Positions 13,701 through 58,180 of a stretch of 64,000 nt of DNA are shown one piece after another (within the stretch, counting starts at the first letter, position 1; each line of letters opens with the position of its first letter). The translations under genes were made by a program, and so were the position numbers. Source of the stretch: Tubulanus polymorphus (lineage: Eukaryota; Animalia; Nemertea); NCBI RefSeq assembly GCF_964204645.1, contig NC_134031.1, forward strand, positions 7,192,001 to 7,256,000, given 5' to 3'. The notes below the pieces were generated by a model. That model made no database searches, was not told the origin of the DNA, and saw only the letters and a program-made list of their open reading frames with translations.

Positions 13701-16700
13701 ATAAAATCTAATTCCCTGTATTTGATGACAGCTTCGCGGTGGTATCTAATATCGGTTAATCCTTGTACGAGTAGATATAAAGACTGATCAGTGAGTAATA
13801 GGAAAACGGTTTGACATTCACTCTCAGTGTGTCCAACCGACGTACGGTACATCTACAAATAATAGAAAATTCCTAAATACCAGTAAATCAGGATTAGATT
13901 TGGGGTCAACAGGTCACAATTTTGGTGGCCCACCTCATCAAATCTAAATCATATGAAAGCCTTGGCTATCTACTACAAAATCACATGAACTTGCCATACA
14001 ACTGGGAATCAACTGAAATGAGCTATTTTGTAAACACGCCATTGTGCCAAATCTAATTCAAATTCAACTAAAGAACAATTGTTTACGATTCCAAATTCGT
14101 TAAACGCCATATTTTCTTATTCCAATGGCAGCGTTATCTCAGACTGTGACTGAAATTCTCAAGTCGACATACGCCATACGTAAGGTCACCCGAAGTCTCA
14201 CGGATTTTAATGCACTATGAAATGTCAGCGACTGGGCGAGTGCTTCAAACAAACGAACGAACAAACGAACGAACCTTATGAAACTGTTCATCTTGTTCTT
14301 GAAAAACGTCCAACATCAGGTATAACATCGTATTATTATCAACCCTGAAATAAACGGCTTAAGATTTACACAAACACGCGACATGAAACGCATCATATAC
14401 CGGATAACGTAATTTTGACTCTTCCAGCTTTCAGCTCATACGAGCATCAACCATTTTTGGTACACAATGTACATGAAAGACTATCTTCATGCCAGCGCAC
14501 CTAGTGAGTCCTCCATCGCCACAGTAGCCTGCATTAGAATAAGAGAACTGTGAACAGAATTTATCGACCTACATACTTGATGTCCCATTCCTGAGATGAA
14601 GTTGAATCGGGGGAGCTCGTTTCGCTGGAGCCGATCACTTGTCGTCCGTCGCCGGTCAGCAGATTGCGATCGTCTAGAGAACCCTGACTGGCTCCGTCCC
14701 CTTCGCCTCGTAACAACGGCATCAATAATCCATTCTGTATCGCGACTAGACTATCGTCTATTTCATCGGCACCGGCGTCCACGGTTAGATCATCCTCGGG
14801 AGCATCTGACCAGAAAAAGAAAAGGACATGAATTCTCAAAATACGTGATCATATTTTGTAATTTAACGTGTGGGGTCACTTGCTTAAGTTTAAAAGACCT
14901 ATGTAAACTAAGTGAAAACCAAGTCCAAGATTCTAAAACATTTTTAACTCGAGCCACAGAAGTGCAATTTGCACCTGGGCTTGATCGTAACAAATACTGT
15001 TAGCTATCAGTATGACAAGGAGCCTATCAGCTTATATAGCTCCGCTGTGTGATTTGAAGAAATAGAAGCTGCATACCTAGGGGTGCCCCTTTTGGCCAAA
15101 TCCAAAAAGGGCTCTGTACTGTAGGTATTGGTCCATAGAACATTCATACCAAATTTGGACTTGATCTGATTAAAACTGTAGGACTAATAGCAATTTGAAG
15201 AAATAGAAATTCTGCCCCAAAGGGCGCCCCCTGGTGAACGAATCCAGAAAATGGCTCTGTAACTTCATAGGACGTGGTCCATAGAACATCCATACCAAAT
15301 TTGGAATTGATCTGATTAAAACTGTAGGACTAGTAGCGATTTGAAGAAATAGAAACTTATATAATCCTTATCATTTTAACAAATTGCATCATTCATCTCA
15401 GTGATAAGCAAAAGTACTTCGAACCATCCTCCCCTCTGACAGGGATTCGAACCTGATGGCATTGAGACTCGCCACGGTGTGAAACCCTGCCAGACCAGCC
15501 TCAATGCGAAGCTTAGATGACATCATTATAAGCCAATCAGAAATCTTGTTATATTACCACCTTGGCTTTTCCAATTATAGTGTTCCCTTGGAATTTGCCT
15601 CAGCGATTTTACAGCAGGCAATCTGATACAAGCCATGTACCTGTGCACACAGTCTAGTGTGGCAGGGTTGGTTTCATGCTGTGGCAGAGTCTAGCGATGC
15701 CATCAGGTTTGAATCCCTGCTGATGAAGGATGCACCTGAACAGGAATACATACGTACGGCATGTAAAAAATACGACTTACTTATAACGATCGAACCGTCA
15801 ATATCATCTCTGTTACCACCGACACTGCGGTCGTCGTAGTAACTCCTACGATCAACCATCAAATCGTCGAAATCGTTGTTGATCTCATTTCTCTGATAAC
15901 TAGCGGAATAGATATCATTCCAGCTCGAGTCGACGCCGCCGCTCCTCTGCGCCGCTGAGGCGTTGACAGCCACGACCGGCAGCGTCGTACGATTCCCGCC
16001 GCAGACGGCGCTAGCCGTATCCAGATCATTGTCTACAGAGCCTCTAGTTTCGGGCCGGGCCATCGACGAACTCAGAACCACCGAGTTGCTCGGTGATAAT
16101 GTCGAGATGAAGTCTGCGTCGTAGCCGCCGACAGACGGACTAGCGTGAACCGGTGGAGAATTCGCCTGAAACGTTCCGTTACCAACTGGAGGACTAGCCG
16201 GAACCGGTCCATTAGGAACAGGAGCGCCAGCCGAGACCAGTCCGTTAGCTACTCGAGGACTCGCTTGAACCGTTCCCATAGATACAGACGGACTTCCGTG
16301 ATGACTAGAGTACGAACTATCGGCGCTCGGTTCTCCGGCGGCTACGACAACCGAGCCGCTCGTACGCGGCGACTCCGACAACGATCTAACTATATCGCTC
16401 ACGTCCACGCGTCGTCGTCCGCCTGTTGCCGAACGACGATTGTTATCGTCGAGTTGATTATCGCCGTCCGCCTCGCTGCGTTCCTCGCCGTCCGGACAGA
16501 AATTCACGTCGATGATTCGCGATAGTTCCTCCTTGTGAACGGTTACGACGTTCGTGTCGTCGCCCGCCGTCGTCGTAGGCGAATTGCCGCGGACTATCTG
16601 ACGTTTTTGGAACACGGCGCGCACGTGTTTCGCGAGCGGGTCGACATAAAGCGGCTCTTCTCCGCCCATTCCGCTATCCTGACTGTCTGACGTCGTCGGC

Positions 16701-19700
16701 ACCTCTCCAACGCCGCTATCCTGACTATCCGAAGCTAGGATATTTTGCTTCGATTTCGGCGACTTCGGTTCGCACGGATTTTCTTCCTTGATACTGAACT
16801 CGTTTAAACTCGTCAGCAACGGCGAATCCGATGCAGTTGACGGCGTAGTCGGCGTCGGCGGGTCGGAACCTTTACGCTTTTTCTTCTTACGTTTAACGCG
16901 GATCACTTCCAGAGCGTCACCGATCGCCGTCGAATCCACGTTGTTGTTGTCTTTCAGTAAACTGTCGATCGAGCTCGTACGTGAATGCGCTGTGAAGTCG
17001 GACGCACTCGCCAGGCGAGAATTCTCGGAACTAGCGCTGTACGCGTACGGTCGCGACGAACTCTCCGAGCTGCTGGCGACGCTGTGAGTGTCGTTTTCGA
17101 ATACGCTACGCGATGACAGAGAATCGCTCATCATACTCGACGTCTGAAACGAAAATTGAATGATTAACGATTATTCCGCGAAAATAAACCACTATTCAAA
17201 CCTGTTTAATCTGGATCAGTTTTATTTTTCTATTCTAAACCGGAACGTATGGTCCATCAAGACTTTAATGTATGTTGAATTATTCGCATTCTCATAAAAC
17301 CTAATGATCAAGATTAAGTGCGGTTTACGTCGACAAAATCCCAAAATTAAGACAGAAGTTTTAAGACAGAATAAACAGATTATTTTTCAAATTCTGTTCG
17401 TGTGATTTCATTATTTCATGCCCGTAATTAATTGATATTATTAAGAGAACCAATTATGGTTTTCTCGAGTTTGGTTTTCCCTACAATCGGTTGTTCAATT
17501 TTTTTCAAATAAGCACACAAAACGCACAGTATTAAGTATAAAAACTTTTTAAGCGTTAACATTTTCTAAGCAAAGCCGAATTCCGAGTTGAGAGCTGCGT
17601 TACACAATCCAGCAACTAGTTCCACAGTTTTCAATTGAAGTTTCAACACCAGGGTTTATTGGAGACGAACTTAAGACTAAAAACTTAAGTAACCACCCAA
17701 TACTACCGAATTTGTTGTTTCAAATAAGTTAAGCAATCGGGATGTGGTAATTCCTGTTTCGATAAGCATGTTTTTTTTTAACACGGGTATTTCTGAATTG
17801 TTGCTCAGATGGGCTTAAACTGAATATTATCTACCGGTATATGTTACGCCAATGGATATCTTAAATACCAGTACATGTACACCGGTGAAGCTAACTTTTA
17901 TGCTCAAAAATCCGATACAAAGATAAGATTGAATAAAACAATCATAATCTATCTTATCATAGACATAAAATTGCCTTAAACGTTTTACGCGTACACGAAA
18001 ATAGTTCTTTCGATCGATCAGTTGTATCTTATCTTATCGTTTTACATTGTGATTGTTTCTAAGTCAGCTATGCAATAGCTAACAATGGCTGATGTTATGA
18101 AGTGCTATTTCGAGAGATTTTATTAAGACTCGTGATTTCACTTGACTCGACTAAGTAAGCGGTGAAATAGTTTGCCGATTGTTCACGACACACTGTCTAT
18201 ATACCGGTAGGGGCTATTCATAAGGCGTGTAAATATCCGCAGATGGGTGTAGTAAAATCTCGGCAATTTGTACCAATGTACAAAGTACTTGAATTTGCGT
18301 ATATGGGGAGGAGGATATGAAGACAAAACCATACATATAAATGTACAAGAGAATTTTTTATGGCGACACCCTGATAAAGAACGATTGAAGAGCAAAGGAC
18401 ATCAACCTCTTCGATAACATTCGTGACGGATTTTTCCGTCGCAAAGAATGTAATATTTTCTCACCATGCATAACGGATTTTACATCGCAAATATATGCGT
18501 TTACTACAATCGCTGGTGTGGCCAATCACTACGCCACTGGTGTGTAGCCATACTAAATAACTGTCCGCTTCAATTGAGTTTCAATTTTCACTCATAGATG
18601 GCAGTTCAGTACCTCATACACTGAATTGATTAGAATTGAATGATGCCATCGGGTTCGAATCTCTGTGAGGGCGTCACATTATCCGTGGTAGTGGAGAGGC
18701 TAAATATCTGGAGGCTGTATTTATATAGGCCTAAGGCCTTCTGTGGTGGTAATTAATGATCGGAAACAATTTCACACACGCACTTTATGAATGGCCCTTT
18801 ACCGATATTTTTGTCACAAGGGAAAGATAATGAACCAGCTCGGAGTTAGGGATACATTATGAAATCGGCTCGAAAATAGCGAATTTATGGGATGAAAATA
18901 TTACCAGAGAAGCCTCCGAACTCATGCTGCTTAAAGAAAGGCGTTCATCGTCATATTCATCGACGCTACGTCTCGCGTTCGGCATATAACTGGATAGATC
19001 TAAATATGGCATATCCTGTAAAACATATAGAAATCATCACCATATCTATTCACTCGGATTAGTTGGTTGAATAGGGAACTACTGCTTTGAAAATTGTGGA
19101 TTCATTTAACTTCCTTCATACATTTTATGTAGGCTATAATCTAAATAACTTATTTTTAATTGCAAATCTAACATGAAATTGTAATTTTCGAGGTTATCGA
19201 AAAAGATAAGCTGTTATAGGCAAATATTCAGGGATTCTATGCGCAAACGTCTCTTCCTTTAAAGATGATCGAGTTGTCTGAAGTTTTAACTCTGAGGATT
19301 GTGGATATAGAGTTAAATGAGTAGTCTAGTATACCCAGGTCCCTACAGAACAGTCATTCCTGGTTATAAGGAGTTTAAAAGCAGAAACTTTCAAGATTCT
19401 GAGGAAGCGTCCGCATCACTTTCATACCCCAATTACAGTACGCTCCTCAATCAGCATTTCTTACCTCCGTAAACCATTAATTTGGTGGTTTTGTAACAAA
19501 TTCTTATCCATAACACTATCCTAAACATAGTTTCTAATTTGGTATTAAAAAAAATCCTGGTCCCAACTTAGGCATGTAGAGAAAATCCCACAATTATAAT
19601 GAAAAAGTCCGAAAATGTAACTTCGAGATAGTAGTTTATTTCAACGTTTCAACTAAATCCTAATAGTCATCTTCAGGAATAAATTAACGTTGAAATAAAC

Positions 19701-22700: not shown

Positions 22701-23525
22701 GCACAGGCAGAATTCGACTCGAGCATAATACGGACCAAATCGTCTCCAGATCACGGCTTAGGAGTCAAATTGCCATTGATAAGTGGTTAAGTACAGAAGC
22801 CCCTTGGTGACATACGAGCTAGCTTTTTCACAATTTCGATTTAACATCGAAATTGGACATAATAACTTAAAATTTGACATAAGTCGAAATTTGGATATAA
22901 TAAGTGTATTTTATAAGTGTAAGTGAAAAAAATTATGTCGTATGTCACCTAGGGGCTTCCATTGTTAAGCCTATGTGATCAAAGCACAAATAGTGTAATC
23001 TTGATGAAACAGTCTATCCATGTTGAAACAATATACCCTAAAAATCCACAATACAAGAAAAATGATTCTGTAAGGTCTTCCTCCTCTTCTTCCATTTGAT
23101 TTCGACGTTTTGAAAATACGAAATACTCATGGAAACTTTTTCGGACTCTTTTTCTACGAGTAGTACGGCTACGTGATTAATGTAGGCCTATCCTTTGCCG
23201 GAGACAAAATTGTGCTATCATCATAGGCCTATGCCACTTTGTCAGTCAACAGTAACCACAAACAATAAGAGCCGGGTAAATTTTAAACATAATTTACATA
23301 ATTTGATGATTAAGCAATGTGCATTCTTCGATTGTACATAATCATTATATAATGAAATCATGTGATTTTCAATGCATTTTCCCCCACCTGTTTAATAGCG
23401 CGACCGACGCTCTCCAATATCCTATCTTTGAGGCGTAATCGTTCTTTAACGATAGAATTTCGTCTTTCCATCGTTGCTAGTATCACGTTGTTCTCGTCAT
23501 TGTCTTCTTCCTGAGGAGATTTCAT
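4794..23525 (-). CDS. PLEKHM2: Pleckstrin homology and RUN domain-containing M2 (SKIP) orthologue, 18 coding exons, ~1176 aa
   Basis: Phase-consistent GT-AG exons (minus strand): 23388-23525, 22161-22267, 20937-21046, 20155-20279, 19958-20020, 18905-19015, 15781-17143, 14577-14805, 14275-14344, 13697-13852, 13319-13407, 12673-12805, 11324-11493, 9305-9379, 8583-8751, 7010-7186, 6792-6911, 4794-4919. Peptides match human SKIP as I recall it: LKDRILES, LCEHLDHALLHG, GRAWLYMALNEN, SGLEFVRFEL, PYLDLSSYMP (RUN); LEVIRVKRKKKK; VDNNTMLYLMLDVF, CTNRRKQF, LVHWEDP, CSGCRR, WLMALCQAV, CQEDVQTNFFRTLG (PH region). Confidence 0.95.
6200..6485. mobile_element. MITE; related inverted copy at ~22465-22760
   Basis: Termini gcgatcacac / gtgtgatggcggc. 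Internal sequence (tgtgcctaatt, cagttgttctggaccaaa) is shared with 22465-22760 in reverse orientation. Confidence 0.6.
7626..8360 (+). mobile_element. Helentron-associated (HINE/DINE-1-like) non-autonomous element, 5'-truncated copy
   Basis: High identity to 35270-35990. Ends with the hairpin/sub-TIR gcccgctgggactaaagtcccaagtgggctaa. Confidence 0.8.
8870..8965 (-). mobile_element. tRNA-derived SINE-like fragment; related copies at ~15424-15500 (-), ~15680-15730 (+), ~18640-18670 (+)
   Basis: Shared gatgccatc(a/g)(a/g)gtt(c/t)gaatc(c/t)ctg containing a Pol III B-box-like GTTCGAATC. No complete cloverleaf. Confidence 0.55.
9963..10130. mobile_element. TA-flanked MITE (Tc1/mariner-type)
   Basis: ta|cggtacagctt ... 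aagctgtaccg|ta. Confidence 0.7.
10370..11110 (+). mobile_element. HINE-like element copy (one internal unit, 3' end missing)
   Basis: Starts cagggacaccatgctcacttgggaagtg; body matches 34735-35990. Confidence 0.8.
11935..12225. repeat. Long imperfect inverted repeat (MITE or foldback)
   Basis: agacttatttt-cactggataatatagcttaact...gttctctagatttgttc pairs with gaacaaatctagagaac...agttaagctatattattcagtgaacataagtct. Confidence 0.75.
12288..12484. repeat. Penelope-type inverted pLTR hairpin with degenerate hammerhead-like motif
   Basis: Arms of ~95 bp around a short loop. The right arm reads cac-cagatga-agct...agc-gaaa-gctt-gtg followed by aaataa. Confidence 0.6.
14995..15360. mobile_element. Second HINE-like repeat fragment with two ~145-bp tandem units
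   Basis: Duplicated gtccatagaacat(t/c)cataccaaatttgga...ctgattaaaactgtaggacta...atttgaagaaatagaa. Confidence 0.55.
19574..19760. mobile_element. Penelope-type inverted pLTR hairpin in PLEKHM2 intron 5, same family as 60750-60857
   Basis: 75-bp arms (19574-19648 and 19686-19760). Sequence is nearly identical to 60750-60857, which lies next to a GIY-YIG fragment. Confidence 0.8.
19640..19679 (-). ncRNA. Minimal type-I hammerhead ribozyme-like motif
   Basis: Minus strand: ttc-CTGAAGA-t-gacta-ttaggatt-tagtt-GAAA-cgtt-gaa, giving short stem I, 5-bp stem II and a palindromic AACGTT stem III. Confidence 0.55.
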
Positions 23526-23529
23526 TACA

Positions 23530-24950
23530 CATTTTTGACAGTTTTTCTCTCAGACAGCGAAACAAGCGACTTCCACCATTTTGACGTTGACGTCTGCAAA
23601 GTGGCGCCGCGTCTATGAACGCGTGTGTGAGCGGAACTAATATGCAGCCGTGGTTTCGAATCCTGTATGATTCAAAAATATTCTTTAGATGCCATATCAT
23701 TCCTTTGGGCGACGAAAATCGAAATTTAACGAGTTTAATGCATCCGAGATACAACAAAAATCCCTAACGTTATCGTTTATATGATACGTTAGTTCATTTG
23801 TTGCCAATCATTTTTAGGGTAACCTTGATTTATGATATTATCACCATGGAAACTGCATTTTGCGCTTTTTCATCGACACGCCAAAAAAGTTGATTTTGGT
23901 CTCCCAAAAGTAGAAATCGAATCTTGGCAAAGAAAACATTCCTTATAAATAACCTTAAACATGTGAGATCAGTGTATCCGATAGAAGGATGAAAAAATAC
24001 GATTTCAGTAAATGCATTTAATGTGTATTGTTTTCTATCATTGCACCGCACAAATTTTTATGTCCCAGGTAAGACTTGATTGAATACGGTACTCTACAAT
24101 CAGAATCCAATTTTCAAAATACAGTACTACAATTTTGAGTGGGTTATGAAATGATTTAAGCCATATTATACATGATTTGTCGTTTTTCGTGATTATTTTA
24201 CCATATAATTTATGGTAAAAGTTCAGATTCATTGATGCCCGAACGTTGAACTGTTGTTGATTTTACCTCTTTCGCGCCACTCGTCAAAAATATACTTATG
24301 GATCCATTAGGCACCAGACATCACCTTGAAAAGGCTAAATTGAAAAAAAATGTACCGGTGAACCAAAAGTTTTGAATTCTCGCGCGAGAAAACAAAACTT
24401 TTTCAATTCTCGCGCGAGAAAATCAAAAGTTTTGAATTCTCGCGCGAAAAAACCAAACTTTTTGAATTCTCGCGCGAGAAAACCAAAAAACGGGCCAATG
24501 TGAAAAATTTGTTATCGTTGCTTTAGCCGTACAGAAAATTTTTTAGCATGGCCCGAATCAGCCACCATACAAAATTGCCTTTTTGCAACCCAAAATAAGT
24601 CGTCCCAATCGATCCCAAAAGCAGAAAAGGGCACGTATTTTTTAAGATGAGGCCAGATAAAAAAGACACATTCAGTGCATGGTATACATGCACGAATGGA
24701 TTTTCGAAGGCTACGTCCCTGAGCAATCTGGGTTGACGTCGCATTCTATTTTCCAATTAACTTTCACAATTGATAAAATATCTTGGCCTGCGCAGTCATA
24801 TGACAAAAACGATTTCCCCTGAAATTTCCGGGAAACTTGGTTCGGACACTCGCTGTCTCGTCACAGTGCGTTAGGACTTCTCTTAATAAAGGGCTGGTCT
24901 TGGCGTGCCCTTTCTATCAACTTATGACCGGTACTTTAAGCGGTCATTTT
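23530..24950. promoter_or_regulatory. Putative divergent (bidirectional) promoter region
   Basis: PLEKHM2 ATG at 23525 (-) and first exon of the + gene ending 25105. CpG-rich patches at ~23560-23650 and 24361-24480. TSSs were not determined. Confidence 0.45.
24361..24480. repeat. 4 x 30-bp tandem repeat with palindromic core TTCTCGCGCGAGAA
   Basis: Exact 30-bp period, with spacers alternating aaaagttttg / aaacttttt(c/g). Lies between the divergent starts of PLEKHM2 and the repeat-protein gene. Confidence 0.93.
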
Positions 24951-25260
24951 TTCATTTTCTTTGCTTCGTATCTGTTGCGTCTCGTGAAAACAATTTTCAG
25001 TCCAGTGGAATCGCAGTGTGGAAAGTTGACAGGAAGGGTAGCCTATTTAATCGAAAAGTAATAAACAACCAACATTCATTTTGTCATCGGTACCGTGAAG
25101 TCTAGGTGAGTGGCAATTTTTTATCTATCTAATTGAAAACTCGATTTTTTCTTTATGAAGTCTGTATACGTATATACATGAAAAATGTAGCAATCCATTG
25201 GCTATGCAAATTGTTGCAAAATATTTTCTTTTCTTTTTTGGCGATGTGATTCTAGGGAAA

Positions 25261-27914
25261 ATGTCTTCTTTTCATCACCAGTCCTCTTCTTCCCACAGCT
25301 GTAAGTAAAAACTGTTTTTAATCAAGATTTCTAAAACGCCATTAAGGATCTCATGATTGCAAAGATAACAGCGGAATCATCAGTTATTCATAAAACTAAC
25401 ATGATCGATGGTTTTAAAGATAAACTATAGCCACTTATTCAAAAAAAGCCTAACCATAGGCATTAGGCTTATAACAAGTAAAAACATTCTACGATATTTC
25501 GCGAGCACCGATACAAAATTGGTGTCGATCTAGAACTTAATTCTTAGTGATAAATGTAATATATAGATTTGTATAATTCATTACAGCATGCAGTTCGTTC
25601 TCCTCGAGTGGTGGCACAGGCGAAATTAAGGCAAGTTTTTTTTCACTATGGATGATAGTCGGTTTTTATAGCCTGATAGTTTCGAAAATGCCTTTTAAAA
25701 GCTAGGGGTCGGGGTAGTTATTTTGATGGATCCGCGTGTGACTAGATATTTTCGTTTGAACGCTGCTTTTAGAACTGGGACCGCCCCGTGTCGAAAAATT
25801 CGGGGCAAGATTTTTCGGAATCTGGATACAATTTTCAGGGGTTTTTTTTAAATGAAAAGTAATCCATTCTCCAATGATTTATTGAGGTACTCAAATTCTT
25901 TTTTTTGGGGGGGGGGGCATTGATTTTCAATATGAAAGCTATACCCCTTTTCGCGGTGAAAAAGTGCCCTTTTTCTTGAAATAAAACGGGCCCTATGGGA
26001 TTTGTCTCAGACTGTCATGTTAGTCCATGGACGACTCTAAAATGATATAATTCATTTTTTAGAGTCCATATTTAGCACATGTATATAAACTTTTATTTCC
26101 GGAACAGGCTTGTTTGTCTGGTATTCGGACTTCAAACCATCGACTGTCTTGGGTGCGTGCCTGGCGAGTGCACTCGGGCCCGATTAGAATGGATTTGCGG
26201 TTCTGTGAGGTTCACTGATTCCTGTGAACTCTGCGGAATTATTCTGGAGAGGTCTTTGACCGGCGAAAGACTAGAACTCAGCGTCATTATGGTGGCTGAT
26301 CGGGCCACAACTCAAATTAATTTCAAAAACTTGTTTTTAGCACGTATGTTGATCTGAATTTAAATTCATTTCCGTGAGTTTGAAAACGAGGGATTTTTAA
26401 ACTACTTTAAATCAATTTGAGACTCCGGGAATTCAGCAGCCACCCATGATTTAGATTATTGTATCTGAACCTATGATGGTCCGACTAAAGAATGATTCGA
26501 AAAGGTGTTATTTTCCAGCATCCGCTGAAAACGACTTGTTTTGATAACAGTTATATACTAAAATCAACTATGGGTACTTTTGTTAGGTCCTGAAAACATT
26601 TTGATTGTTTTCAGCAGGTGCTTTTTCGAAACCTTTGACCTGAGTTAAATATTCGTGTCTTAAAATAATTAGCTGCGGTTTCTGTTATATAAAGACACGA
26701 GGACCGCAAAGCGGGGGTGGGGGCATTAGGGGCTTATAATTCTTCGCTGCTTTAAAAATTCAAATAAAGTCCTTCTCCGGCCGCACACAAAATTTAAATT
26801 CGATGTGCGGACTCCTTATCACCAGAAAAAAACTGCACTTTCAGCGCTCGTGACTTTTAGAGCCCCCAAGTATATAGGCTTTGGGATCGGTAGTTAGCGC
26901 CCAACCCCGCCCCATCTTGAGGCCGTTTCGCAGCCCCTTGAGAAAAGCAGGCGCAGTAAATCCCTATCAAACTAACTATATATAGCTATATATACTTTTT
27001 TTCTGTTGCAGTTTGGTCAAAGTATCTCGGGGACTGGTCCAGCACTTTATAGGACCGCTGACGGTGTGGAGCACCAAGAAGGCGGGGCTAGGGTGACCAG
27101 TTTTTCCGCTACGGGACCGGCACTTTATAGGACCGCTGACGGTGTGGAGCACCAAGAAGGCGGGGCTAGGGTGACCAGTTATTCCGCTACAGGACCGGCA
27201 CTCTATAGGACCGCTGGCGGAGCGAAACACCAAGAAGGCGGGGCTAGGGTGACCAGTTATTCCGCTACAGGACCGGCACTCTATAGGACCGCTGACGGAG
27301 TGGAACACCAAGAAGGCGGGGCTAGGGTGACCAGTTTTTCCGCTACTGGACCAACACTTTATAGGACCGCTGACGGTGTGGAGCACCAAGAAGGCGGGGC
27401 TAGGGTGACCAGTTTTTCCGCTACGGGACCGGCACTTTATAGGACCGCTGACGGTATGGAGCACCAAGAAGGCGGGGCTAGGGTGACCAGTTTTTCCGCT
27501 ACAGGACCGGCACTCTATAGGACCGCTGACGGAGTGGAACACCAAGAAGGCGGGGCTAGGGTGACCAGTTTTTCCGCTACTGGACCAACACTTTATAGGA
27601 CCGCTGACGGTGTGGAGCACCAAGAAGGCGGGGCTAGGGTGACCAGTTTTTCCGCTACGGGACCGGCACTTTATAGGACCGCTGACGGTATGGAGCACCA
27701 AGAAGGCGGGGCTAGGGTGACCAGTTTTTCCGCTACGGGACCAGCACTTTATAGGACAGCTGACGGTGTGGAGCACCAAGAAGGCGGGGCTAGGATGACC
27801 AGTTATTCGGCTACGGGACCAGCACTTTATAGGACAGCTGACGGAGTGGAGCACCAAGAAGGCGGGTCGAGAATAACTGGTTTTTCTGGTACAGGACCCG
27901 GACTCAGGAACTAG
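25261..27914 (+). CDS. Unassigned ~328-aa protein: short Ser-rich N-terminus plus 11 x 26-aa repeat (TGPALYRTADGVEHQEGGARVTSFSA)
   Basis: Model: non-coding exon ending 25105 (AG|GTGAGT); exon 25256-25300 with ATG at 25261; exon 25587-25630 with GC donor (AAG|GCAAGT); exon 27012-27914 after a strong polypyrimidine-CAG acceptor. Phases join in frame (MSSFHHQSSSSHSSCSSFSSSGGTGEIK-FGQSISGTGPALY...). Many differences between repeat units are synonymous in this frame. Confidence 0.75.
27033..27890 (+). repeat. Coding minisatellite, 11 x 78 bp, with a 234-bp higher-order duplication (units 4-6 = units 7-9)
   Basis: Directly visible. Diagnostic variants (TGPTLY, ADGMEH) recur with period 3. Confidence 0.97.
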
Positions 27915-28991
27915 TGACCATTTTCAGCGAATGAAACGTACAAGACCTGCTACATGCTACTAGACCCAAATTAGAAATTCTAATCTATATATAGCTTTTC
28001 AATGATTGAAATTTTGTGGTGGTATTAGTCTGTAGATACATATAAACTACATATGTGTACACACATATGTGTCATGTGAACCAGCAATCATGATTTTCTT
28101 GCTTATGATATGGTCAAGCCCTGACGAGCATCCCCATCGTAACTCAGATTGACTGAGCCCGCCAGACTCGGTCGATCAGCCGTGAACTAAGTCCTCTTAA
28201 AAGTAGTCTTTAAGTTGTTAGATCGGCTTCAGTATCTAAATAGCTCGGACAGTGGCGGATCCAGGGGGGTTCCAAGGGTTCTGCAATACCGTGCCCCTTG
28301 GAGTTGCCCCTAAATCCATGGATTAGTAGTGGAATAATAGTGGAATAATAGTGAGTGCCCTTGGAACCCCCTCCTGATAGGGCCCTGGATCCGCCCCTGC
28401 TGGAAACCGGTCTTAAATCTAAGCCATGACCCCAGAGGTTCCAAAAATCAGAATCATCTCAGCTTATTACAAACTCAATCACAAAATCGTATTCAGTCAT
28501 TCATTCCAAATAATTTTATTGATACATAAACGATAGAGTGGACTTTGATTTTATATCTTCCAAATCGATAATATAACAATCGAAATTGAACAACATATTT
28601 CTTCAATACAAGCGAATACATTTTTGTAAGTGTAAATTCATCAGAAAAAGTGGAGAGCAAACTTGATAATATACAAAAATTATAAATAACCATCCAACAC
28701 ATGATAAATTCAAATATCAAAGGACAAGGTCGATTAGCAGTTGATCAGCACATAATTGAACAGTAGAACAATAGAAACGATACAATTGTAGAATTCGTAA
28801 TATTTAACTTATTCCTGTATGAACTATTCATCTAATCATTTAGAAAAATTTATGAAATTCAACAGCGAATAAATATTTTTTCAAATAATGCATTTTTACA
28901 TATCACTCATTGGGTTACGAGTATATGAGAATTGAGCCGTTTCGACAACGATTCGAGTAACTTCAGCAGATATCCCACAAAAATCAACGTA

Positions 28992-31096: not shown

Positions 31097-34000
31097 TTAG
31101 AAAGGCTGCGAGAAAACTATTTGCATCGGTTTGCTCGTATCCAACGAGACTTGGTGAGTTGGACCAGACGGCAATAAGAACGAGTGCACACTGGTCGATC
31201 GTACTAATTTATGGCAGATTGAACACTGGTCGTCGTCCGTTTGTTTACGCAACGCCGTCAACGTCGCGACGCTGCCTGATCGCTGAATCGGTTTACGAGG
31301 CGAGGACGTCGCCGTCGGTGTCGTGGCCAACCCGGTTGATAACGATCGACGTCGTCGCGGCGACGGCGAACTCAACCGACTAAACACGTTCTCTTTATCG
31401 TTGCTCGCGTTTTGCGACGAACTTTGCGCGTTTTCCAATTTATCGCGGTCCTCCGCGCCACGTTTCGCTTTCGTTTGTGGTTGAGGCAGTCTCGACGGTT
31501 TTGTAGCGGCTAAATGTGGAGTAGAAGATGTCAGACGTTGCGACGATTTCAGGCCCTGATACTGAGCAAGTTTGCTCTTCAATTTCGGTTTCGAAGACGA
31601 CGACGCCGCGGCTGACGACACGTCTTCCGTAGATTTACTAGTTGTCGCGTCGGGCATTTTCCGCTGAGGAGTTTTCGTCACTAGACTCACCGGAGTTTTA
31701 GCTTTCAACGGCATCCGAGGTCGCGGACTACCGGTTACGACTACCGGCTTCACTCCTAGTTTACGCAACAATTCATCGGGTTTATCTTTTTTAAACGTGC
31801 CACGTCTTTCGCTCGACCGATTCGCATTCGAGCTTGCTGCGCTCGAGTTTTCGCTTGCCACTGCCGCAGCTGCTGGGGCCAACCGTGGTTGACGTGACAA
31901 CATGTATCGCGGTGTAGCCGGTGCGCTGTACGTTTGATTCAAAGATCGTCTTTTACTGCTCGTAGCAGTAGTAGTAGGCACAGCTGTAGAACTACTCAAT
32001 GACAATCGAGAAGGTTTCGCCGGACGCACGTTACCCTACAAAATACCAGCAAAAGCAATTTCAATTGTGTAGGCCACATGAACATTCTAATCGGAATACA
32101 AGCCATAGGCCCTACTGGGATGACATAATTAAGATGGTACCACAATCTTAGTTAGTAGCATAGGGGAGATTCCCGAAGGCCTTCATTTTAGGATAATGAG
32201 CCTCACTAATTCAGGTCGCAAAAACTTCTATGTTCTGTTAAGTTTGTCGCCCATATGCAGTTTTCTCTACCCGAGATGGTAGACAGACTTCCGAGCACCC
32301 CGGATGAAGATGGTTTGCGCATATCCCAGCATGCCTCAGATTTGGTGGGAATGAAATGTATTTTCTTCTAGGCACAGTCAAAGCAACAATGGGTCATCAC
32401 ATGGATTAGGAAAATTTCAAGCATTTTGTCCAAGGCAGAGATTAATCTGAGGCAATTGGCTCCATGCTGAGCCTAATGTAATTCACTTTACAGTGGAAGC
32501 ACATTATAACTAATTGGGACGGACTTATTCTATTGGGTTGGAAGCAATTTTTGATTGCTGCGGCCAAATGCCGATTTTGGACAGGTTCTAAATATTGCTG
32601 CGGTTAATTTACTTAATTTCTTCAAAAACGTGGTATAGAAAGACAAAAAAAAAACGTCATTCAGTAAATTATTGCCGCGGCTTACGCAGCTGCAGTCGCT
32701 GCACTTCCAACGCCACTGGACAGAGCAAATCAAAGATTTCATTTCACAGAAATCGATATTGAAATACAATTTTAGATCTTAAAATAAAACCCGGAAGTAA
32801 AACGGTAGACGATACCGCGGGTTCACACGTGAACACCTGCTGATATCTGCGGCTAAGCCAATCACAGAGGAGTCTTTGCTTTCTGATTGGCTTTTTAAAA
32901 CAGATATTTTTGCGTTCAGATTTTTGCAAAAAAGCTCGTATAAATTTTAACAAGGCCCTTTTTCAAAATTCAGCTTCATAGGGGTTGGAGAATGGATAAT
33001 GCTCTAATGAATGATTTGTATGAATATATGCTCAGTTGCACAGTCAAAGAGCCTTAGCTCTGGGAACCATGTCATTGCACAACTCTCAACATATGACACC
33101 ATGAAATATCGATAACTTACCGATGAGTTCAAATTCAAACTTTTTTGCGTCGAAAGTTTAGGTTTCACAGACATCCTTTTTTCAATTGTGCTGACAGCTC
33201 TCTTCAACGGAGCACTCTGAAATACCGAACATCATTCATATTGATGAACTAATGGACCACACGGCTGCATAGGTTAGATTTATCAGAAATCGTAGCTCAT
33301 TTAAAATACACTAATAAAAGTAATATAAATTTCTAAACTTTTACTGAATTTACCCGGTTCTGACTTGATAATTTTGGTGCTGGTCTTAACTGTTTATTCT
33401 CCTCAATCTGGACGAAGGATGCCTCTATAAAATTTGAAAAAAAAAAATTTTCCATAATATCTCTTGTACAGCAGTAATCTCATATTGTAATGTGAATTTT
33501 TTTCAGAAAGAAACAAAGACTGAAATAATCAATTTTTACAGGTACTCGTGGATTTACACAGTGGACCCTCATTAGAGTGAAATTCCCGGGACCAGGAAAT
33601 ATGTTCGTTATAACCGATAGTTTGTTATATCCAGTATGAAATTAATCAAATTGTCTTACTCCGGACAAAATTCGAAACTTTTTATATCTGATGAATCGTT
33701 GTATCCGAGTTCGTTGTAACGAGGTTCCTATTTGGTTTCTATTTAGCCTCATACAACACTACTAGTACTTACCATCTTTGATTTTATCTTGCAACTTTTT
33801 AGGAATCTGGTCCCACTCCGGTAACAGCAGTAACTGCGATAAATTGTGGGTGATGAACAATTGACAAAGTTCTTCGATGCGTTTCGTTAGTTTTCTCGAG
33901 TCCTGAAATACAACACAAAGTGAATGACCGATTCAATTCAATTACTTAGGAAAATATGGTGACAACGGTTCTCGGGCTGAGGCTCAAACGCGAACTCCGA

Positions 34001-37000
34001 AATCATCATGCGTTAGTTCCCATTGCATTATGGATATGTTGTATCTAGGGTCAATAGCTAAATATTTTCAAGACAAATTTTTGAATTTCAACCCGGTTCC
34101 TCAGTTATGAGGTCATCTTCAAGGTCATGTCGGTTAGTTTTTAGTGCCTAGTTCTGCTGCTAGGTGGCGCACTTGGTCCACTCTTTGCACTGCATCACTA
34201 GACCTCCTTATTAACATAACACCCAAGTTTCATCAACCGACTCCTAATGAAGCTAAGTATAGCTGAAAGACAGCCACACATATAGGCAAACAGTACAAGA
34301 ATAAGGGTTTCACGGAAGCCCGAGAAACAATATCATTCCCTGGTCTTACGTCAATGGTTAGGTTTACGATCATTCCGATGGGTTTGGGATTATTGGTGAT
34401 ACATCAAAAACAGAAAATAATTACTACAACATCACAAGAAAAGTAGTCCAAAGACTTGACAGTTTAGCCATAGAACACTTTTCAATCCCTCATACTTACC
34501 AAGCTCCAATCACAGATTCCACTATGAGCAAACGATTTCAACTTTCGCGCCGACATGTAAGACTGACAAGCCACTGATACCGGCTGCGAATGAATCACTT
34601 TGTTCATCCAAAATTCCAATAAATCCAAATTCTCCGAAGCTTCCTGCAAATCAAGATGACGATGAAAGAAACTTCAAGGAAATACGAGATATGCTTTTTT
34701 ACAGTGGATATTACGTCGGATAAAAAACTGAATAAACTAGGAGTCCAGGGACACCATGCCCACTTGGGAAGTGGTTTCAAATGCTCAACAATCTAACAAT
34801 TTCAATATTCAACGCCCTCTGGTGACCATATACAAAAACCAATGACCTTGAAACTCAATACAATCATAAAACATGTCAGCAGCTACGATTTTGTAATTGA
34901 TTGTGATAACAAAAAATGCCTCGTTACTAATTTAATATGGAAATACTAAGTTAATCTACTATTCAACGCCCCCTGGTGACCATATTAAAACCCCCAATAA
35001 CCTTGTAACTCACCATATTCATAGAACATGTCATGAACTACAACTTTGCAATTGATCATGGTAACAAAATATGCCTAGGTACCAATATAATAAGGAAATA
35101 CCAGGTTATTCTACTATTCAACGCCCCCTGGTGACCATACAGAATAACTAATTTCCTTAAAACTCACCACAATCATAGATGATGTCATGAGCTACAACTT
35201 TGCAATTGATTGTGGTAACAAAATATGTATTGGTACAAATATAATATAGAAATACTAAGATATTGTATTATTCAACGCCCCCTGGTGGCCATATACAAAA
35301 AACAATGAACTTGAAACTCACCCCAATCATAGAACACGTTATACGCTACAACTTTCTAATTCATTGTTGTAACAAAATATGCTTAACAATATAATGTCGA
35401 AAAACTTTTTCCCACCTACGAATGAGAACTAATGACACCAAGATGGCCGCCAATTGCGTCATAATTGGCGGATCAAAAATACCTATCTCAGGTATAAAAC
35501 ATCCCTTTACAAAGAATACCCATCACAAATTGCAATGAGAAATGGCAAACCAGTAGGAAGCTACAGGACCTAGAATTCTGGCCAAAATTGACATTTTTGG
35601 GCACTAAAAAGGTCATAGGACGGCCATCTTGAGTCAGATGGACCCAATTTTTCTTATGCTGATGGGCCCTTGGTAGATTCAAATATATTCGAAAGATCAA
35701 GGTAATTGATCATATCGCATTCAAAATTTCCCTCGTAAACTTAAAAAATGTGTAAAAAGTGCTGATTTTGGCGAACAACAATGGCTGCCAGTCGGCCATC
35801 TTGATTCTGATAGGGCCAGTTTTTGGGCTGAAGATGTGTCTAGGGTAGATACATGTATAAACCAAATATCAAGACATTACCTTGAAGCGTCTTCAAAACC
35901 TCCCAAAATAACTGGATTCTGTCTACGGACGGACGACGGACGAAAAGTGAACGCAATAGCCCGCTGGGACTAAAGTCCCAAGTGGGCTAAAAATGTACTG
36001 ATTTCATTTAAAGATTTCCCGAACATGCATTTCGGTACAGTCTTTTGGAAAACAACAACAAGATATCTCAAACATTTCGAACAGTTTTTTTTAAATGTGT
36101 TCCACAGTTCATGTCTGATTTTTTACTCCCGAGTTCTAACATTGGAATAAGAGTCGAACTTAACCAAGAACTGTTAAACTGGGTCATGCGGAATCTCGAT
36201 TTCAATCTATCCTGGTAAATCAAACAAAAATATTATCAACAGTTAGCTCTTTACATTAACGATCTTAAATCCAGATTGCTCAATAAAAAACATATATCTC
36301 AGATCTAGGAAATTTTTTTTTGTACCAGGTAGAGTAAACCTTGCCTAACTCTGACAGACTGGGACTGATTAAGTCAGAAAGAAATTAATATTTTTCCAAG
36401 TTACTGGTAGTCACAAGTCCCAAGTTGGCCGTGTCCTCTGTATTAGGTGACGTTTTTCTGAAGTAAAAGCAGTGACCAACATACTAAATATTCTTTTAGA
36501 AACGTCTGCGACTGGAGAACGGCGGAGAAATTCTGCTGTATGAAGGCGATACATTTTGTAGTGATGACAGTCAATAGATCAACTACAGTATCGGCCCATT
36601 TAACTAACGGTAGAATCGATTTCACTCTGTCACAACCGCAAAGTACGGATAACACCGTATCAACAGTCTGAAATATTAATAACATCAAATTGTCAATTTC
36701 AAAACATTTCTATCGAGGCCGTTTTTTGAGTACGCATGTGCCATCCGGGAATCTGCCAAAAAAATCATACGGAAAACGTTACTCTGTCTGTCCAGTTTTT
36801 ATCATGAATATTCAACAAAATTTTTCTTCATATTTCCGTCTTAATTTTCAATTTCTAATGATTTGAAAAAAGTAAGTTTTCTTTGTCTTTCCCATCATTT
36901 CAATTCAATTCAACATGAATTTCACTTGTTATTTATTTTTTGGCACAGGCCTTCTCAAGATTTTATGTGGCAAATACTGGAATAATAAAAAAAAGAAGTT

Positions 37001-43332: not shown

Positions 43333-45657
43333 CAATTTGTAAGCAGTTCATTTCTATAGCTGCCGGATATGTTATGGTTAGTTAGTTACCCAATTCTCCA
43401 GCATTACGTCATAATGCTCGGGATTCCATGAGAAGAGATCACTTCCGGAGTCACTGAGGTCCAACTTCCTTGTGGGTGACGGACGTATTTTGAGAGTGCT
43501 CTCATCAAAATTTTTTTTTTTCGTTCGTTATCGGTGGTCATCTACTGTTGTAAGGTGAAACATTTTATATGTTTATATTTATTTACTTTTTCTTTACCTA
43601 CTGTTGTAAGGTATTTTGAATTTGAATGTTTATGCCATGGCGGCTTATAATAAATTAGATTTACTGGACATTGGGTCTGAAATTACGGTCGCCAATGAGG
43701 ATGAGTCAGTTTGTTCGGCTGGTCTTGTGGCTGACGAAATGTCAGTTCAACAGGCTATTGATGAAGGACGGAGTCAGTCTTTTCTCCTTCTGTCCGATTG
43801 TTATGGGTCTTCGATTAAGAAGAACTCTCAGTCTGTAGCCGTAGGCCATAGTGTTGATAAAAAAGATAAGGACAAAGCCGTTAGACCGAAAGCAATTCCA
43901 AAAATTTCTCGTCGAATTGTTAGGTCAAAGAGCTCAGGTTCAGCTCAACCAGAGACTTTATCTGAAAGTCATGTCGATCCTGTCATGACAGAGTTTTTAG
44001 AGATGAAGAAAAGACTTGAGGCTTTAGAGTCTCAATATTTGCAAAGTGATAATGATCGGTTCGATCTTGGTCAGCAGGATCAATGTGATTTTGGTGATGA
44101 GCTTAATGCGTCTGACCAATTTGCGGCTATTTTTAACCAGGGTTTAGACCGTAATAATAATAACGTCCAGTTACATGAGGACAATGATTTTATGACCTGT
44201 ATTAGGTCAGAGATGGGGGTCTAAAAAATGTCAGACCCCCAATTAAAAATCAACAGTTAGCGCAAGCTGTTGATAAACTGATGACGGGGTTTAGTGGTGA
44301 AAATTCAGATATTAAAAAGGATTTATTTGAAAAATTAGAGAAATCCGTTAGGCAGTATGCTTGTCCTGAGAATATTCCTAGTTTGGCCGTAACTAAAGTG
44401 AATCAGCCAATTTGGTCGAAGTTAAATAAAGATTCGGCTGCTTTTGATTTAAAATGTCAAAAAATTCAGAATTATAACCTTAGAGGTATAACTGCAGTCA
44501 CACAAGCTATGGATCTTTTATCGGGTCCGGACCCTTTGGACAAAAAGACGTTAGGTATGACGTTGTATCACTCTTTGAGTCTTTTTGCGCAAAGCAATTA
44601 TGAGATGAATTTGAGACGTCGGGAACTATTGAAGCGTGGGTTCAACGACGTTTATAAGCCAATCTGGCTCCCCTCAAATCCGATTGGGAAAGAACTTTTC
44701 GGGGATCAACTTGATGACAAGTTACGAGACATAGAAAGGTCAAGTCGTATGGTTACGAAGATGGTAGATCGAGGTCGTGGGAACTATCGATCTAGAGGTT
44801 ATGGGAACAGGAGATTCCAGCCATATAGAAGGCCTGCTTGTTCTAATTTCCCAAAACAGGATTTTTGGAAAAGAGGTCAACATCAGAGGAAATAGTAAGT
44901 TCCCAATTATCTTCTGTTGCTGGCCGAATTAAACATTTTTTCTCTTTCTGGGAGACTTTAACTTCTGACAAATCAATTTTGAATTTGGTTTTGGGTTATA
45001 ACATTGAATGGAATTCGGTGCCTCCTGATCAAATTTTTCCACCGCGTTCTATTAGATTTAATGAAGTTGAAACTTCTGCTATTGACTCACTATTATCAGA
45101 TTTTTTGAGTCGTGGAATTATTGAACTGGCTTTTCGTCGTTCCGAAAAAAGATGGATCATTCAGACTTATTTTGAATTTGACTTGTTTAAACAAGCATGT
45201 CAAGTATTATCATTTTAAAATGAACTCTTTGAAATCAGTTCTTAGTCTTATGACTCCTGGTTGTTTCATGGCCTCTCTAGATTTGAAAGATGCCTATTAT
45301 TCTGCTTGTAGTGATCGGAAATATCTTCGATTTATTTGGAAGGGTCAACTTTTTCAGTATACCTGTCTTCCGAATGGAATTTCATCGGCTCCAAGAATTT
45401 TCACCAAGCTTCTGAAACCTGTTTTTACTCCTCTCCGAGAATTGGGGTATATTTCTGTAGATTATATTGATGATATTTATCTGCAAGGAGATGACGAGCC
45501 TTGTTGCGATGATAATGTAGGCCTTACAGAAAAACAATTGGTTAATTGTGGTTATGTTATACATTCGGTTAAATCGGAAAAGAAACCTAGTACTCAATTT
45601 GTAAGCAGTTCATTTCTATAGCTGCCGGATATGTTATGGTTAGTTAGTTACCCAATT
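43333..45657 (+). mobile_element. Truncated DIRS-group (tyrosine-recombinase) retrotransposon: gag-like ORF plus 5' part of RT, bracketed by a 63-bp direct repeat
   Basis: gag-like ORF at 43616-44895 (frameshift near 44224; PENIPSLAVTKVNQPIW, NLRRRELLK, ELFGDQL). Overlapping RT begins VAGRIKHFFSFWETLTSDKSIL, then FVVPKKDGSFRLILNL, LDLKDAYY, LPNGISSAPRIFTK, YIDD. RNase H and YR are absent. Confidence 0.88.
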
Positions 45658-50124: not shown

Positions 50125-51524
50125 AAAACTCTTTTTATCAACCCCAGGCTTCAAAAAAGTTATAAGCAGGGATCGATTCCTAGCAATATTGACTTTTCTA
50201 CACTGTGTAAATGAGGAAGGCCCACCCTCAACAAAGATGATAAAATCTATAAAACTAGACCAGTGCTGGATCATTTGTTGACTAAGTTCACGAATTTTTA
50301 TGTGCCTGGTGAAAATGTTTCCTTAGACGAGGGCATGATCCCAACGAAAAGTCGACTCTCAATAAAACAATACCTCAAAGACAAGCCCGTAAAATGGGGT
50401 ATAAAAACTTTTTTATTGTGTGACAGTGACAGTGGATATATTATAAACGCAGAAGTATATACAGGTGCACAAAATGATCCTGAGGATGTGGAAGTTCTCG
50501 ATGCAACCAGTAATTTAGTTCGACGTCTTTGTAAACCGTAGTACAGTAGTTTTCCTTAGCGAACATCTTCTGGACGATATGAACACTCGTATTGTTGGAA
50601 CTACAATGACAAACAGGAAGAGATTTCCTGTATGTATCAAAACAGTGAACGACTTAGCACGTGGTGAATATAAGCGCCGTTTCAACGCTCTTGTGTTGAT
50701 GGACAAAAAGCCAATCCACTTCCTCTCTACTGCTCATCTAAAATCTCCTGACACTGAAGTAAGGAGATACATAGCTGCAGAAGGAGGCAGGGTTCAAGTC
50801 CCTGCTCCTAGTATAGTAAAAAAATATAATATGCACACGGGAGGAGTTGATCTCAATGACCAACATACAAAGATGGTTAAGTCCAGACGTCATTACAGAT
50901 GGCCGCGTAGACTTATGGTTAAATTTATGATGTGGGCCATTTATAATGCATACATACTCAAAAGAAAGACCAATCCAAACCAATCCATCACCAGTAGCAT
51001 CCTATTGCTTCCATGATTTTGTTGATGAACTCGTCATGATCTTGTGAGTGATCATGTTGCAAATAGGGACGAACCTGTTCTCAGTCAACGTCGCAAGCAT
51101 GAACACGATCTACAAAGACTGAATGCTGGACAACATTTTCCTGAAAGGGGAGCAGAGGCTACTTCTAACAATCATTGTGTTGTTTGTGATGAACGATATA
51201 AACGTGCAAAAAGGAATGGGGATGTAAATCTACCTAAGAGACGCAAAACTGTATATAGGTGTATGTTATGTAACGTTCTTCTCTGTATCGGCACTGAAGC
51301 TGAAAACTGCTTCCGAAAGTGGCATTCACTTCAAAGATACTGGGAGTAGGGTGAGTGTTTGATATGTTTTTTGAGAAGCCTACTTCCTGTACTGTCTAAT
51401 AAACTTTATTTCATGTAGATATCTTCATTAGTTAAAATTTTACAGCTATTTGAATATAGCCTATTTTTGCCCCCGAAGCCGGGTATATAGTAAAAGGTAA
51501 TATTAAACGTCTGGGTTCATAGGG
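50125..51524 (+). mobile_element. 5'-truncated piggyBac (PGBD4-like) transposon with intact right end
   Basis: SLDEGMIPTKSRLSIKQYLKDKPVKWGIK, YNMHTGGVDLNDQ and a C-terminal Cys-rich CVVC...CMLC...LC...CF..WH domain. Ends AGGG|TTAA at 51524/51525-51528. Confidence 0.9.
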
Positions 51525-57791: not shown

Positions 57792-58180
57792 AACTAGGGG
57801 TCCAGGGACACCATGCCCACTTGGAGAGTGGTTCCAAATGCTCAACAATCTAACAATTTCAATATTCAACGCCCCCTGGTGACCATATACAGAAGCCAAT
57901 GACCTTGAAACTCACCACAATCATAGAACATGTCAGCAGCTACGATTTTGTAATTGATTGTGATAACAAAATATGCCTCGTTACCACTTTAATATGGAAA
58001 TACTGTTATTCTACTATTCAACGCCCCCTGTAGACCATATTCAAAACCCAATGACCTTGAAACTCACCACAATCATAGAACATGTCACGAACTATAACTT
58101 TGTAATTGATCATGGTAACAAAATATGCCTAGGTACCAATATGATAAGGAAATACTAAGTTATTCTACTATTCAACGACT
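57792..58180 (+). mobile_element. HINE-like element 5' part, truncated where BEL/Pao sequence begins
   Basis: Same 5' end as 34735 plus about 2.1 tandem units. Confidence 0.8.

Follow-up and report, generated by a model that had tools for sequence, protein, structure and literature searches.

The DNA analysed here, referred to as the window, is a stretch of 64,000 nucleotides from the ribbon worm Tubulanus polymorphus, and all coordinates are positions within it, on the plus strand unless stated. It contains an open frame carrying a tandem array of 26-residue units, which an earlier note on this DNA had assigned to the fourth and last exon of a spliced gene of no recognised family; we refer to this frame as exon 4 and to the proposed upstream exons as exons 1 to 3 (Table 1). 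Tandem Repeats Finder detected one array at 27042-27866, with a period of 78, 10.6 copies, 94% matches, 0% indels and a score of 1419. Together with in-register cutting into 11 full units, this confirms the 11 × 26-residue architecture that had been proposed. The partial unit at the 5' edge keeps the motif S-x-S-x-T-G-P, with the consensus residue in five of its seven last codons, four of which differ from the consensus only by a synonymous third base. The suggested degenerate twelfth unit is thus well founded for the part lying in exon 4, whereas nothing supports its extension into exon 3. Within the array, the two 234-bp blocks formed by units 4-6 and units 7-9 differ at only two bases, both of which are synonymous third positions at CpG, compared to 16 base differences between units 1-3 and units 4-6. 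Unit 11 shows 12-17 differences to the others and is the most diverged, which is expected of a unit at the edge of an array. DNA and protein searches placed the array at a single locus in the 268-Mb assembly, and when this genome was searched, neither the array nor the 5' region proved to have a paralogue, the weak protein matches being unrelated repeats. The content of guanine and cytosine is 58% in the array, compared to 38% in the flanks.

The plus frame stays open from 27006 to 27914 (302 codons), and the minus frame is open as well (293 codons). As any unit devoid of stops remains open after amplification and both strands are open here, openness alone proves nothing. Each distinct variant among the units was counted once, so that copies made by block duplication were not counted twice, giving 24 distinct variants in 21 variable columns. 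In the plus frame, 14 of them fall at codon position 3 and are all synonymous, and the remaining 10 replace a residue; by contrast, the open minus frame has 5 synonymous versus 19 non-synonymous variants. Random placement of the same mutation spectrum on the consensus unit gave an expectation of 6.95 synonymous variants against the 14 observed (P = 0.0009), and the excess persisted when the CpG context was preserved and stop-creating replicates were excluded (P = 0.0045). Moreover, seven of seven variants at CpG sites are synonymous, and half of the possible CpG transitions in the consensus unit would alter the peptide. The ten replacements (A/T, D/G, V/M twice, V/A, E/K, A/S, S/G, F/Y and A/G) are conservative, with a mean BLOSUM62 score of +0.6 (P = 0.0012). 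The ratio of non-synonymous to synonymous substitution rates (dN/dS) among units, a check that had been set in advance, is 0.197 when pooled by the Nei-Gojobori method over the 55 unit pairs, which is not near 1. The earlier note had claimed a third-position excess, mostly conservative replacements and selection on the peptide rather than a neutral minisatellite; the first two are plainly seen in these counts, and the third is borne out by the synonymous excess in the plus frame together with the dN/dS. Within the limits of 24 variants, these results show that purifying selection acts on the peptide in the plus frame. Comparison of codon usage with the neighbouring open reading frames (ORFs) was uninformative, because one amplified unit dominates the composition.

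The constraint is also apparent along the unit. All Gly and Pro residues are invariant, and hydrophobic positions exchange only for hydrophobic residues, with V9 changing only to M or A, V18 to M or I, and F21 to Y. Arg occupies positions 4 and 17 in every unit, exactly 13 residues apart, and one of the two is preceded by Gly-Gly-Ala. As had been noted, exon 4 has neither a Cys-rich part nor a dibasic site, and adjacent basic residues occur nowhere in it.

Exon 4 terminates in a double stop, TAG TGA, at 27912-27917, the second stop TGA being 27915-27917. Its first in-frame ATG does not occur before unit 6, and the plus frame closes ~30 nt upstream of 27012. Owing to the lack of a usable start and the strong acceptor at 27011/27012, exon 4 must be spliced to something upstream. 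The phases proposed for 25261-25300, 25587-25630 and 27012-27914 are indeed compatible, and exons 2 and 3 would code for 13 and 15 codons, respectively. The splice sites, described as good in the original proposal, are of uneven quality on our generic metazoan matrix, which follows a vertebrate-like consensus and may undervalue sites of this AT-rich genome. That description suits the exon 4 acceptor and the exon 1 donor, whose 10.9 bits exceed the 99th percentile for all GT across the window; however, the exon 2 donor is middling (1.9 bits), and the exon 3 donor is a GC donor, AAG/GCAAGT, with ideal flanking bases. For the acceptors of exons 2 and 3 the description fails, their scores of -2.0 and -0.1 bits being at or below zero. 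A TATTTAA element at about 25044 was read from the sequence, and the stretch 25040-25105, which would contain the leader, has no ATG. The putative last intron carries a dispersed repeat with at least 39 other copies of 71-84% identity on many chromosomes, resembling a short interspersed nuclear element or a miniature inverted-repeat transposable element; such a repeat at this place suits an intron.

To place the proposed path among its alternatives, we enumerated ATG-initiated in-frame paths into exon 4 over 23000-27011, with thresholds loose enough to admit all sites of the four-exon model. When the 80 in-frame paths found are ordered by total site score, that of the four-exon model comes 74th, and by mean score it comes 52nd. 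Alternative models also arise from exon 2, which has a second open frame. An alternative first exon at 24012-24068 has the strongest donor of the region (11.1 bits) and joins exon 4 either directly or via the other frame of exon 2, yielding more hydrophobic N-termini. The 5' end is thus not fixed by sequence alone, and the four-exon model should be taken as a hypothesis; it follows that the absence of a signal peptide is not established.

Table 1. Coordinates of exon 4, its repeat units and the candidate upstream exons in the window
Feature	Position	Strand	Basis and remarks
Candidate non-coding exon 1 of the earlier note, start coordinate guessed	25070-25105	+	Donor TAG/GTGAGT; inference only
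Candidate exon 2 of the earlier note	25256-25300	+	ATG at 25261 with A at -3; unique in the genome
Candidate exon 3 of the earlier note, 44 nt	25587-25630	+	Phase fits, frame open; unique in the genome
Putative last intron	25631-27011	+	Includes the ~200-bp dispersed repeat, at about 25789-25995
Acceptor, TTGCAG after a T-rich tract	26990-27011	+	Best-scoring site of the model (6.1 bits, generic matrix); 74% pyrimidine
Terminal coding exon (exon 4), 300 codons and TAG stop	27012-27914	+	Open frame; synonymous excess and dN/dS 0.20 in the plus frame only
Degenerate partial unit at the 5' edge of the array, 10 codons	27012-27041	+	Comparison with the consensus unit
Eleven in-frame 78-bp units	27042-27899	+	One 26-residue peptide unit each; no indels
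Blocks of a recent higher-order duplication, formed by units 4-6 (27276-27509) and by units 7-9 (27510-27743)	27276-27743	+	Unit comparison
Four-codon remnant of a truncated twelfth unit, running into the stop	27900-27911	+	Sequence

Sequence searches with exon 4 as the query, against protein collections that together hold ~15 billion proteins, agreed with the statement that the gene belongs to no recognised family, as no full-length match to a characterised family was found in Pfam, the PDB sequences or the protein collections. In Pfam, neither open frame matched a family at the curated cut-offs, with only noise below threshold, and no PDB sequence matched exon 4 at E ≤ 1. A word-indexed search of 5.8 billion protein clusters returned no match, whereas an exhaustive phmmer search of 1.84 billion representatives returned 26 matches, all of which are low-identity alignments of repeat to repeat. 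The look-alikes in the ESM Atlas (best score 0.79, recognition 976) included nothing usable, the viral, prokaryotic-genome and metagenome contigs gave pattern matches only, none of them confirmed, and Rfam found nothing over the whole window. In addition, neither the searched literature nor the supplements of a nemertean neuropeptidomics study (PMC8557429) contain the unit peptides. The neighbouring 486-codon ORF, searched as a control, came up blank too. Given this blank control and collections that seem to leave out this genome, the blanks carry no information on expression or annotation.

Two database matches resemble the worm unit superficially. The best one, from the stick insect Timema monikensis, is an uncharacterised protein (CAD7433596.1; P0001) that aligned with E = 1.4e-30 and 39% identity, and its C-terminal tandem repeat shares with the worm unit T-x-P-A-L-Y-R plus a G/R/V-S stretch. 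However, its repeat has a period of 23 residues, compared to 26 in the worm, and its 650-residue N-terminal part has no match in the worm genome. The other, a metagenome protein (P0007; ENA ERZ25067548), has the same period of 26 residues and an identical run of 8-9 residues, G-V-E-H-Q-E-G-G, whereas the rest of its unit is unrelated, and the protein, of C2H2 type, is encoded without introns on a metagenome contig of 934 kb. In both cases a short match multiplied by the repeats inflates the E-value. We rejected the insect protein as a chance match, in which one short match is repeated ten times, and the metagenome protein as well, since we estimate that a library of 2.4e11 residues should contain matches of nine residues by chance.

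Structure prediction by AlphaFold2, run on exon 4 alone with no alignment, yielded an 11-coil β-helix with three strands per unit, at a mean pLDDT (predicted local distance difference test) of 88.5 and a predicted template modelling score (pTM) of 0.86. Each predicted unit starts with a strand of 7-8 residues over R-V-T-S-F-S-A, which a T-G-P turn links to a second strand, of four residues, over A-L-Y-R; a third, short strand and a Gly-rich turn complete the unit. The invariant Gly and Pro residues, together with the hydrophobic-only exchanges at V9, V18 and F21, agree with such a fold. Foldseek with this model found nothing at E ≤ 0.001, the top weak row being curli CsgA. Superposition by VIA-align gave Z-scores of 17-20.6 over all 300 residues to right-handed β-helices. 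The compared structures include phage tailspikes (PDB 7eea and 3gq7), the adhesins PfbA (PDB 3zpp) and EtpA (PDB 8cpk), pectate and alginate lyases, and an antifreeze protein (PDB 3p4g). Similar to these right-handed parallel β-helices, the model has three strands per coil of ~26 residues, with a root-mean-square deviation of 2.2-4.2 Å. However, the sequence identity is only 4-14%, and the worm repeats are near-identical and devoid of caps or catalytic parts. No Pfam β-helix family is matched by exon 4, and the likeness, being that of a predicted model only, may be an artefact of AlphaFold2. The further resemblance to the Asp-box/BNR motif that had been suggested does not hold, as BNR (PF02012) gave no match at E ≤ 1. 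Compared to the Asp-box motif S-x-D-x-G-x-T-W, the corresponding segment of the unit, T-A-D-G-V-E-H-Q, places the Gly one position early and lacks T-W.

In its genomic architecture, exon 4 resembles coding minisatellites, that is, exons with a variable number of tandem repeats (VNTR), such as the 20-residue array of the mucin MUC1 and involucrin. They share an in-frame unit whose length is a multiple of three, a homogenised array that expands by unequal recombination, decayed edge units, and nearly the whole protein in one large exon. Compared to MUC1 and involucrin, the worm protein has a composition that is not mucin-like, and it has no sequence relative. Moreover, the worm unit is under clear purifying selection at most positions, and not on its composition alone. 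The candidate gene is an orphan within a well-known category, that of tandem-repeat protein genes specific to one lineage, rather than a system of a new sort; invertebrate genomes commonly contain orphan repeat proteins.

We conclude, with a probability of about 0.72, that 27012-27914 on the plus strand represents the final coding exon of an animal gene, single-copy and taxonomically restricted, in which a coding minisatellite under peptide selection is spliced to one or more small upstream exons. In this gene the array would grow by unequal recombination, to which the very recent copying of a three-unit block points, while selection would preserve the 26-residue peptide during growth, and the acceptor at 27011/27012 would join exon 4 to the upstream exon or exons. 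The predicted product has a mass of at least ~31 kDa, is mildly acidic and contains much Gly, Ala, Thr and Ser; each unit may supply three short strand-prone segments split by the invariant Gly and Pro turns. It would most likely serve as a repetitive structural or binding module, each unit contributing either one coil of a β-solenoid or one valency of a disordered scaffold. The number of units would then set the length or the valency, and a rod form would be ~5 nm long.

Several observations weigh against this conclusion or parts of it. A single array with no more than 24 variants underlies the selection test. The choice of upstream exons is under-determined, as the four-exon path ranks low among the alternatives and needs a GC donor. 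Downstream, the 950 bp that follow the stop lack a canonical AATAAA and offer only variants of this hexamer, for instance TATAAA at 28041. Exon 4 has no orthologue in the searched protein collections, which seem to omit this genome. Concerning the fold, the mean hydropathy and net charge of the protein lie on the boundary between order and disorder (0.438 versus 0.422). Furthermore, the non-coding minus frame (26979-27857) was also predicted to fold as a regular β-solenoid, with a pLDDT of 70.6 and a pTM of 0.73. In line with this control, AlphaFold2 gave confident β-solenoids for 32 of 78 (41%) random perfect-repeat sequences (Pratt et al., PMC11795689), and the caution of that study, in which MUC1 is also discussed, extends to natural near-perfect repeats. 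Owing to the minus-frame control and these published results, the predicted solenoid has little weight for a near-perfect repeat. The earlier suggestion of a β-rich repeat fold is hence matched by the AlphaFold2 β-helix but gains little from it, and we regard β-solenoid and disorder as about equally likely.

Other explanations of the locus differ from this one in the 5' end, in the present state of the gene or in the coding nature of the array itself. The same coding exon might be joined to a different 5' end that encodes a signal peptide, making the product a structural protein secreted into mucus, tube or extracellular matrix rather than the intracellular one of the four-exon model. Secretion is frequent among invertebrate proteins with near-perfect repeats, alternative in-frame paths, for instance that from the first exon at 24012-24068, yield hydrophobic N-termini, and the predicted fold matches extracellular adhesins, tailspikes and lyases. 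We nevertheless consider secretion possible rather than probable, for translated AT-rich non-coding DNA easily gives hydrophobic peptides, the first exon at 24012-24068 is preceded by a short upstream ORF, and the protein has no Cys residues and a Ser, Thr and Pro content that is not mucin-like. It is decidedly unlikely that the exon is a relic, which once coded and evolved under constraint in a gene now dead or untranscribed. Such a history would fit the missing start codon, the unconvincing upstream exons, the lack of a canonical poly(A) signal nearby and the failure to find a relative; however, there are zero frameshifts or stops in 900 bp, the newest changes, which separate the blocks of units 4-6 and 7-9, are synonymous, and the array is still expanding in frame.

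The array could also be a non-coding minisatellite, open by chance because its unit has no stops in two frames. Both strands are indeed open, a stop-free unit stays open upon amplification, and the sample of variants is small. This explanation is very unlikely in view of the synonymous excess (P ~0.001-0.005) and the conservative replacements (P 0.001), a signal that is specific to the plus frame and absent from the other open frame, and of the edge units, which preserve the peptide and not the DNA. The regular 13-residue spacing of Arg in all units, with Gly-Gly-Ala before one Arg, would suit a multi-copy precursor of the neuropeptide or antimicrobial polyprotein type, in which cleavage at both Arg of a unit would release two 13-residue peptides. 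We hold this to be highly improbable: exon 4 contains no dibasic (KR/RR/KK) sites and no amidation-type Gly directly before a basic residue, and the peptides were found neither in the PMC8557429 supplements nor in the searched literature. The N-terminus of the four-exon model lacks a leader, while alternative paths give hydrophobic ones. Coding by the minus strand, for example as a decayed zinc-finger-like repeat, would account for the 293-codon open frame and for a weak zf-H2C2_2 match of 26.2 bits. It is improbable in the extreme, as the match lies below the 40-bit cut-off, the unit has one Cys and a period of 26 rather than 28 residues, and the variants in this frame are 5 synonymous versus 19 non-synonymous. 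A C2H2 zinc finger in the minus frame was accordingly rejected, the pattern C-x2-4-C ... H-x3-5-H over ~28 residues being absent.

Returning to the terminal exon of a restricted gene under peptide selection, a more specific picture of its product can be drawn from the predicted model, which we find rather doubtful. The protein might be a three-sided β-helix of 11 near-identical 26-residue coils, representing a family born in animals and without relatives. The length of such a rod might be tuned by the minisatellite, which continues to expand, and its ladders of Arg, Tyr, His and Glu might face a periodic ligand, for example a polysaccharide of mucus or tube.

If expressed, the gene would illustrate, cleanly and on a small scale, how a coding minisatellite under measurable selection on the peptide builds and resizes the protein of a young gene restricted to one lineage. 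It also offers a natural test case of whether the confident β-solenoids given by AlphaFold2 for near-perfect repeats are real, and the solenoid predicted for the minus frame is a practical reminder that such models need controls. The repeat exon opens no long-standing question.

Further features were found in the rest of the window. About 600 bp upstream of putative exon 1, at 24361-24488, there are four tandem 30-bp units, each with the 14-nt palindrome TTCTCGCGCGAGAA (one mismatch in one copy), of which zero copies are expected by chance in the window; they could be a cluster of regulatory motifs or part of a small mobile element. On the minus strand, two long ORFs at 15674-17134 (486 codons) and 31097-32029 (310 codons) encode low-complexity peptides rich in Ser, Ala and Pro. 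Neither matched a Pfam family, and that at 15674-17134 was blank in the large protein search; both are probably exons of poorly conserved genes flanking the repeat gene. Transposon remains are present on the plus strand, namely a reverse transcriptase fragment at 45112-45618 (RVT_1, E 5e-11) and a piggyBac-type transposase fragment at 50579-51013 (DDE_Tnp_1_7, E 3e-8). In addition, 34806-35382 and 57863-58177 contain the same family of 152-154-bp tandem repeats, with 3.7 and 2.1 copies, respectively, and 80-86% matches.

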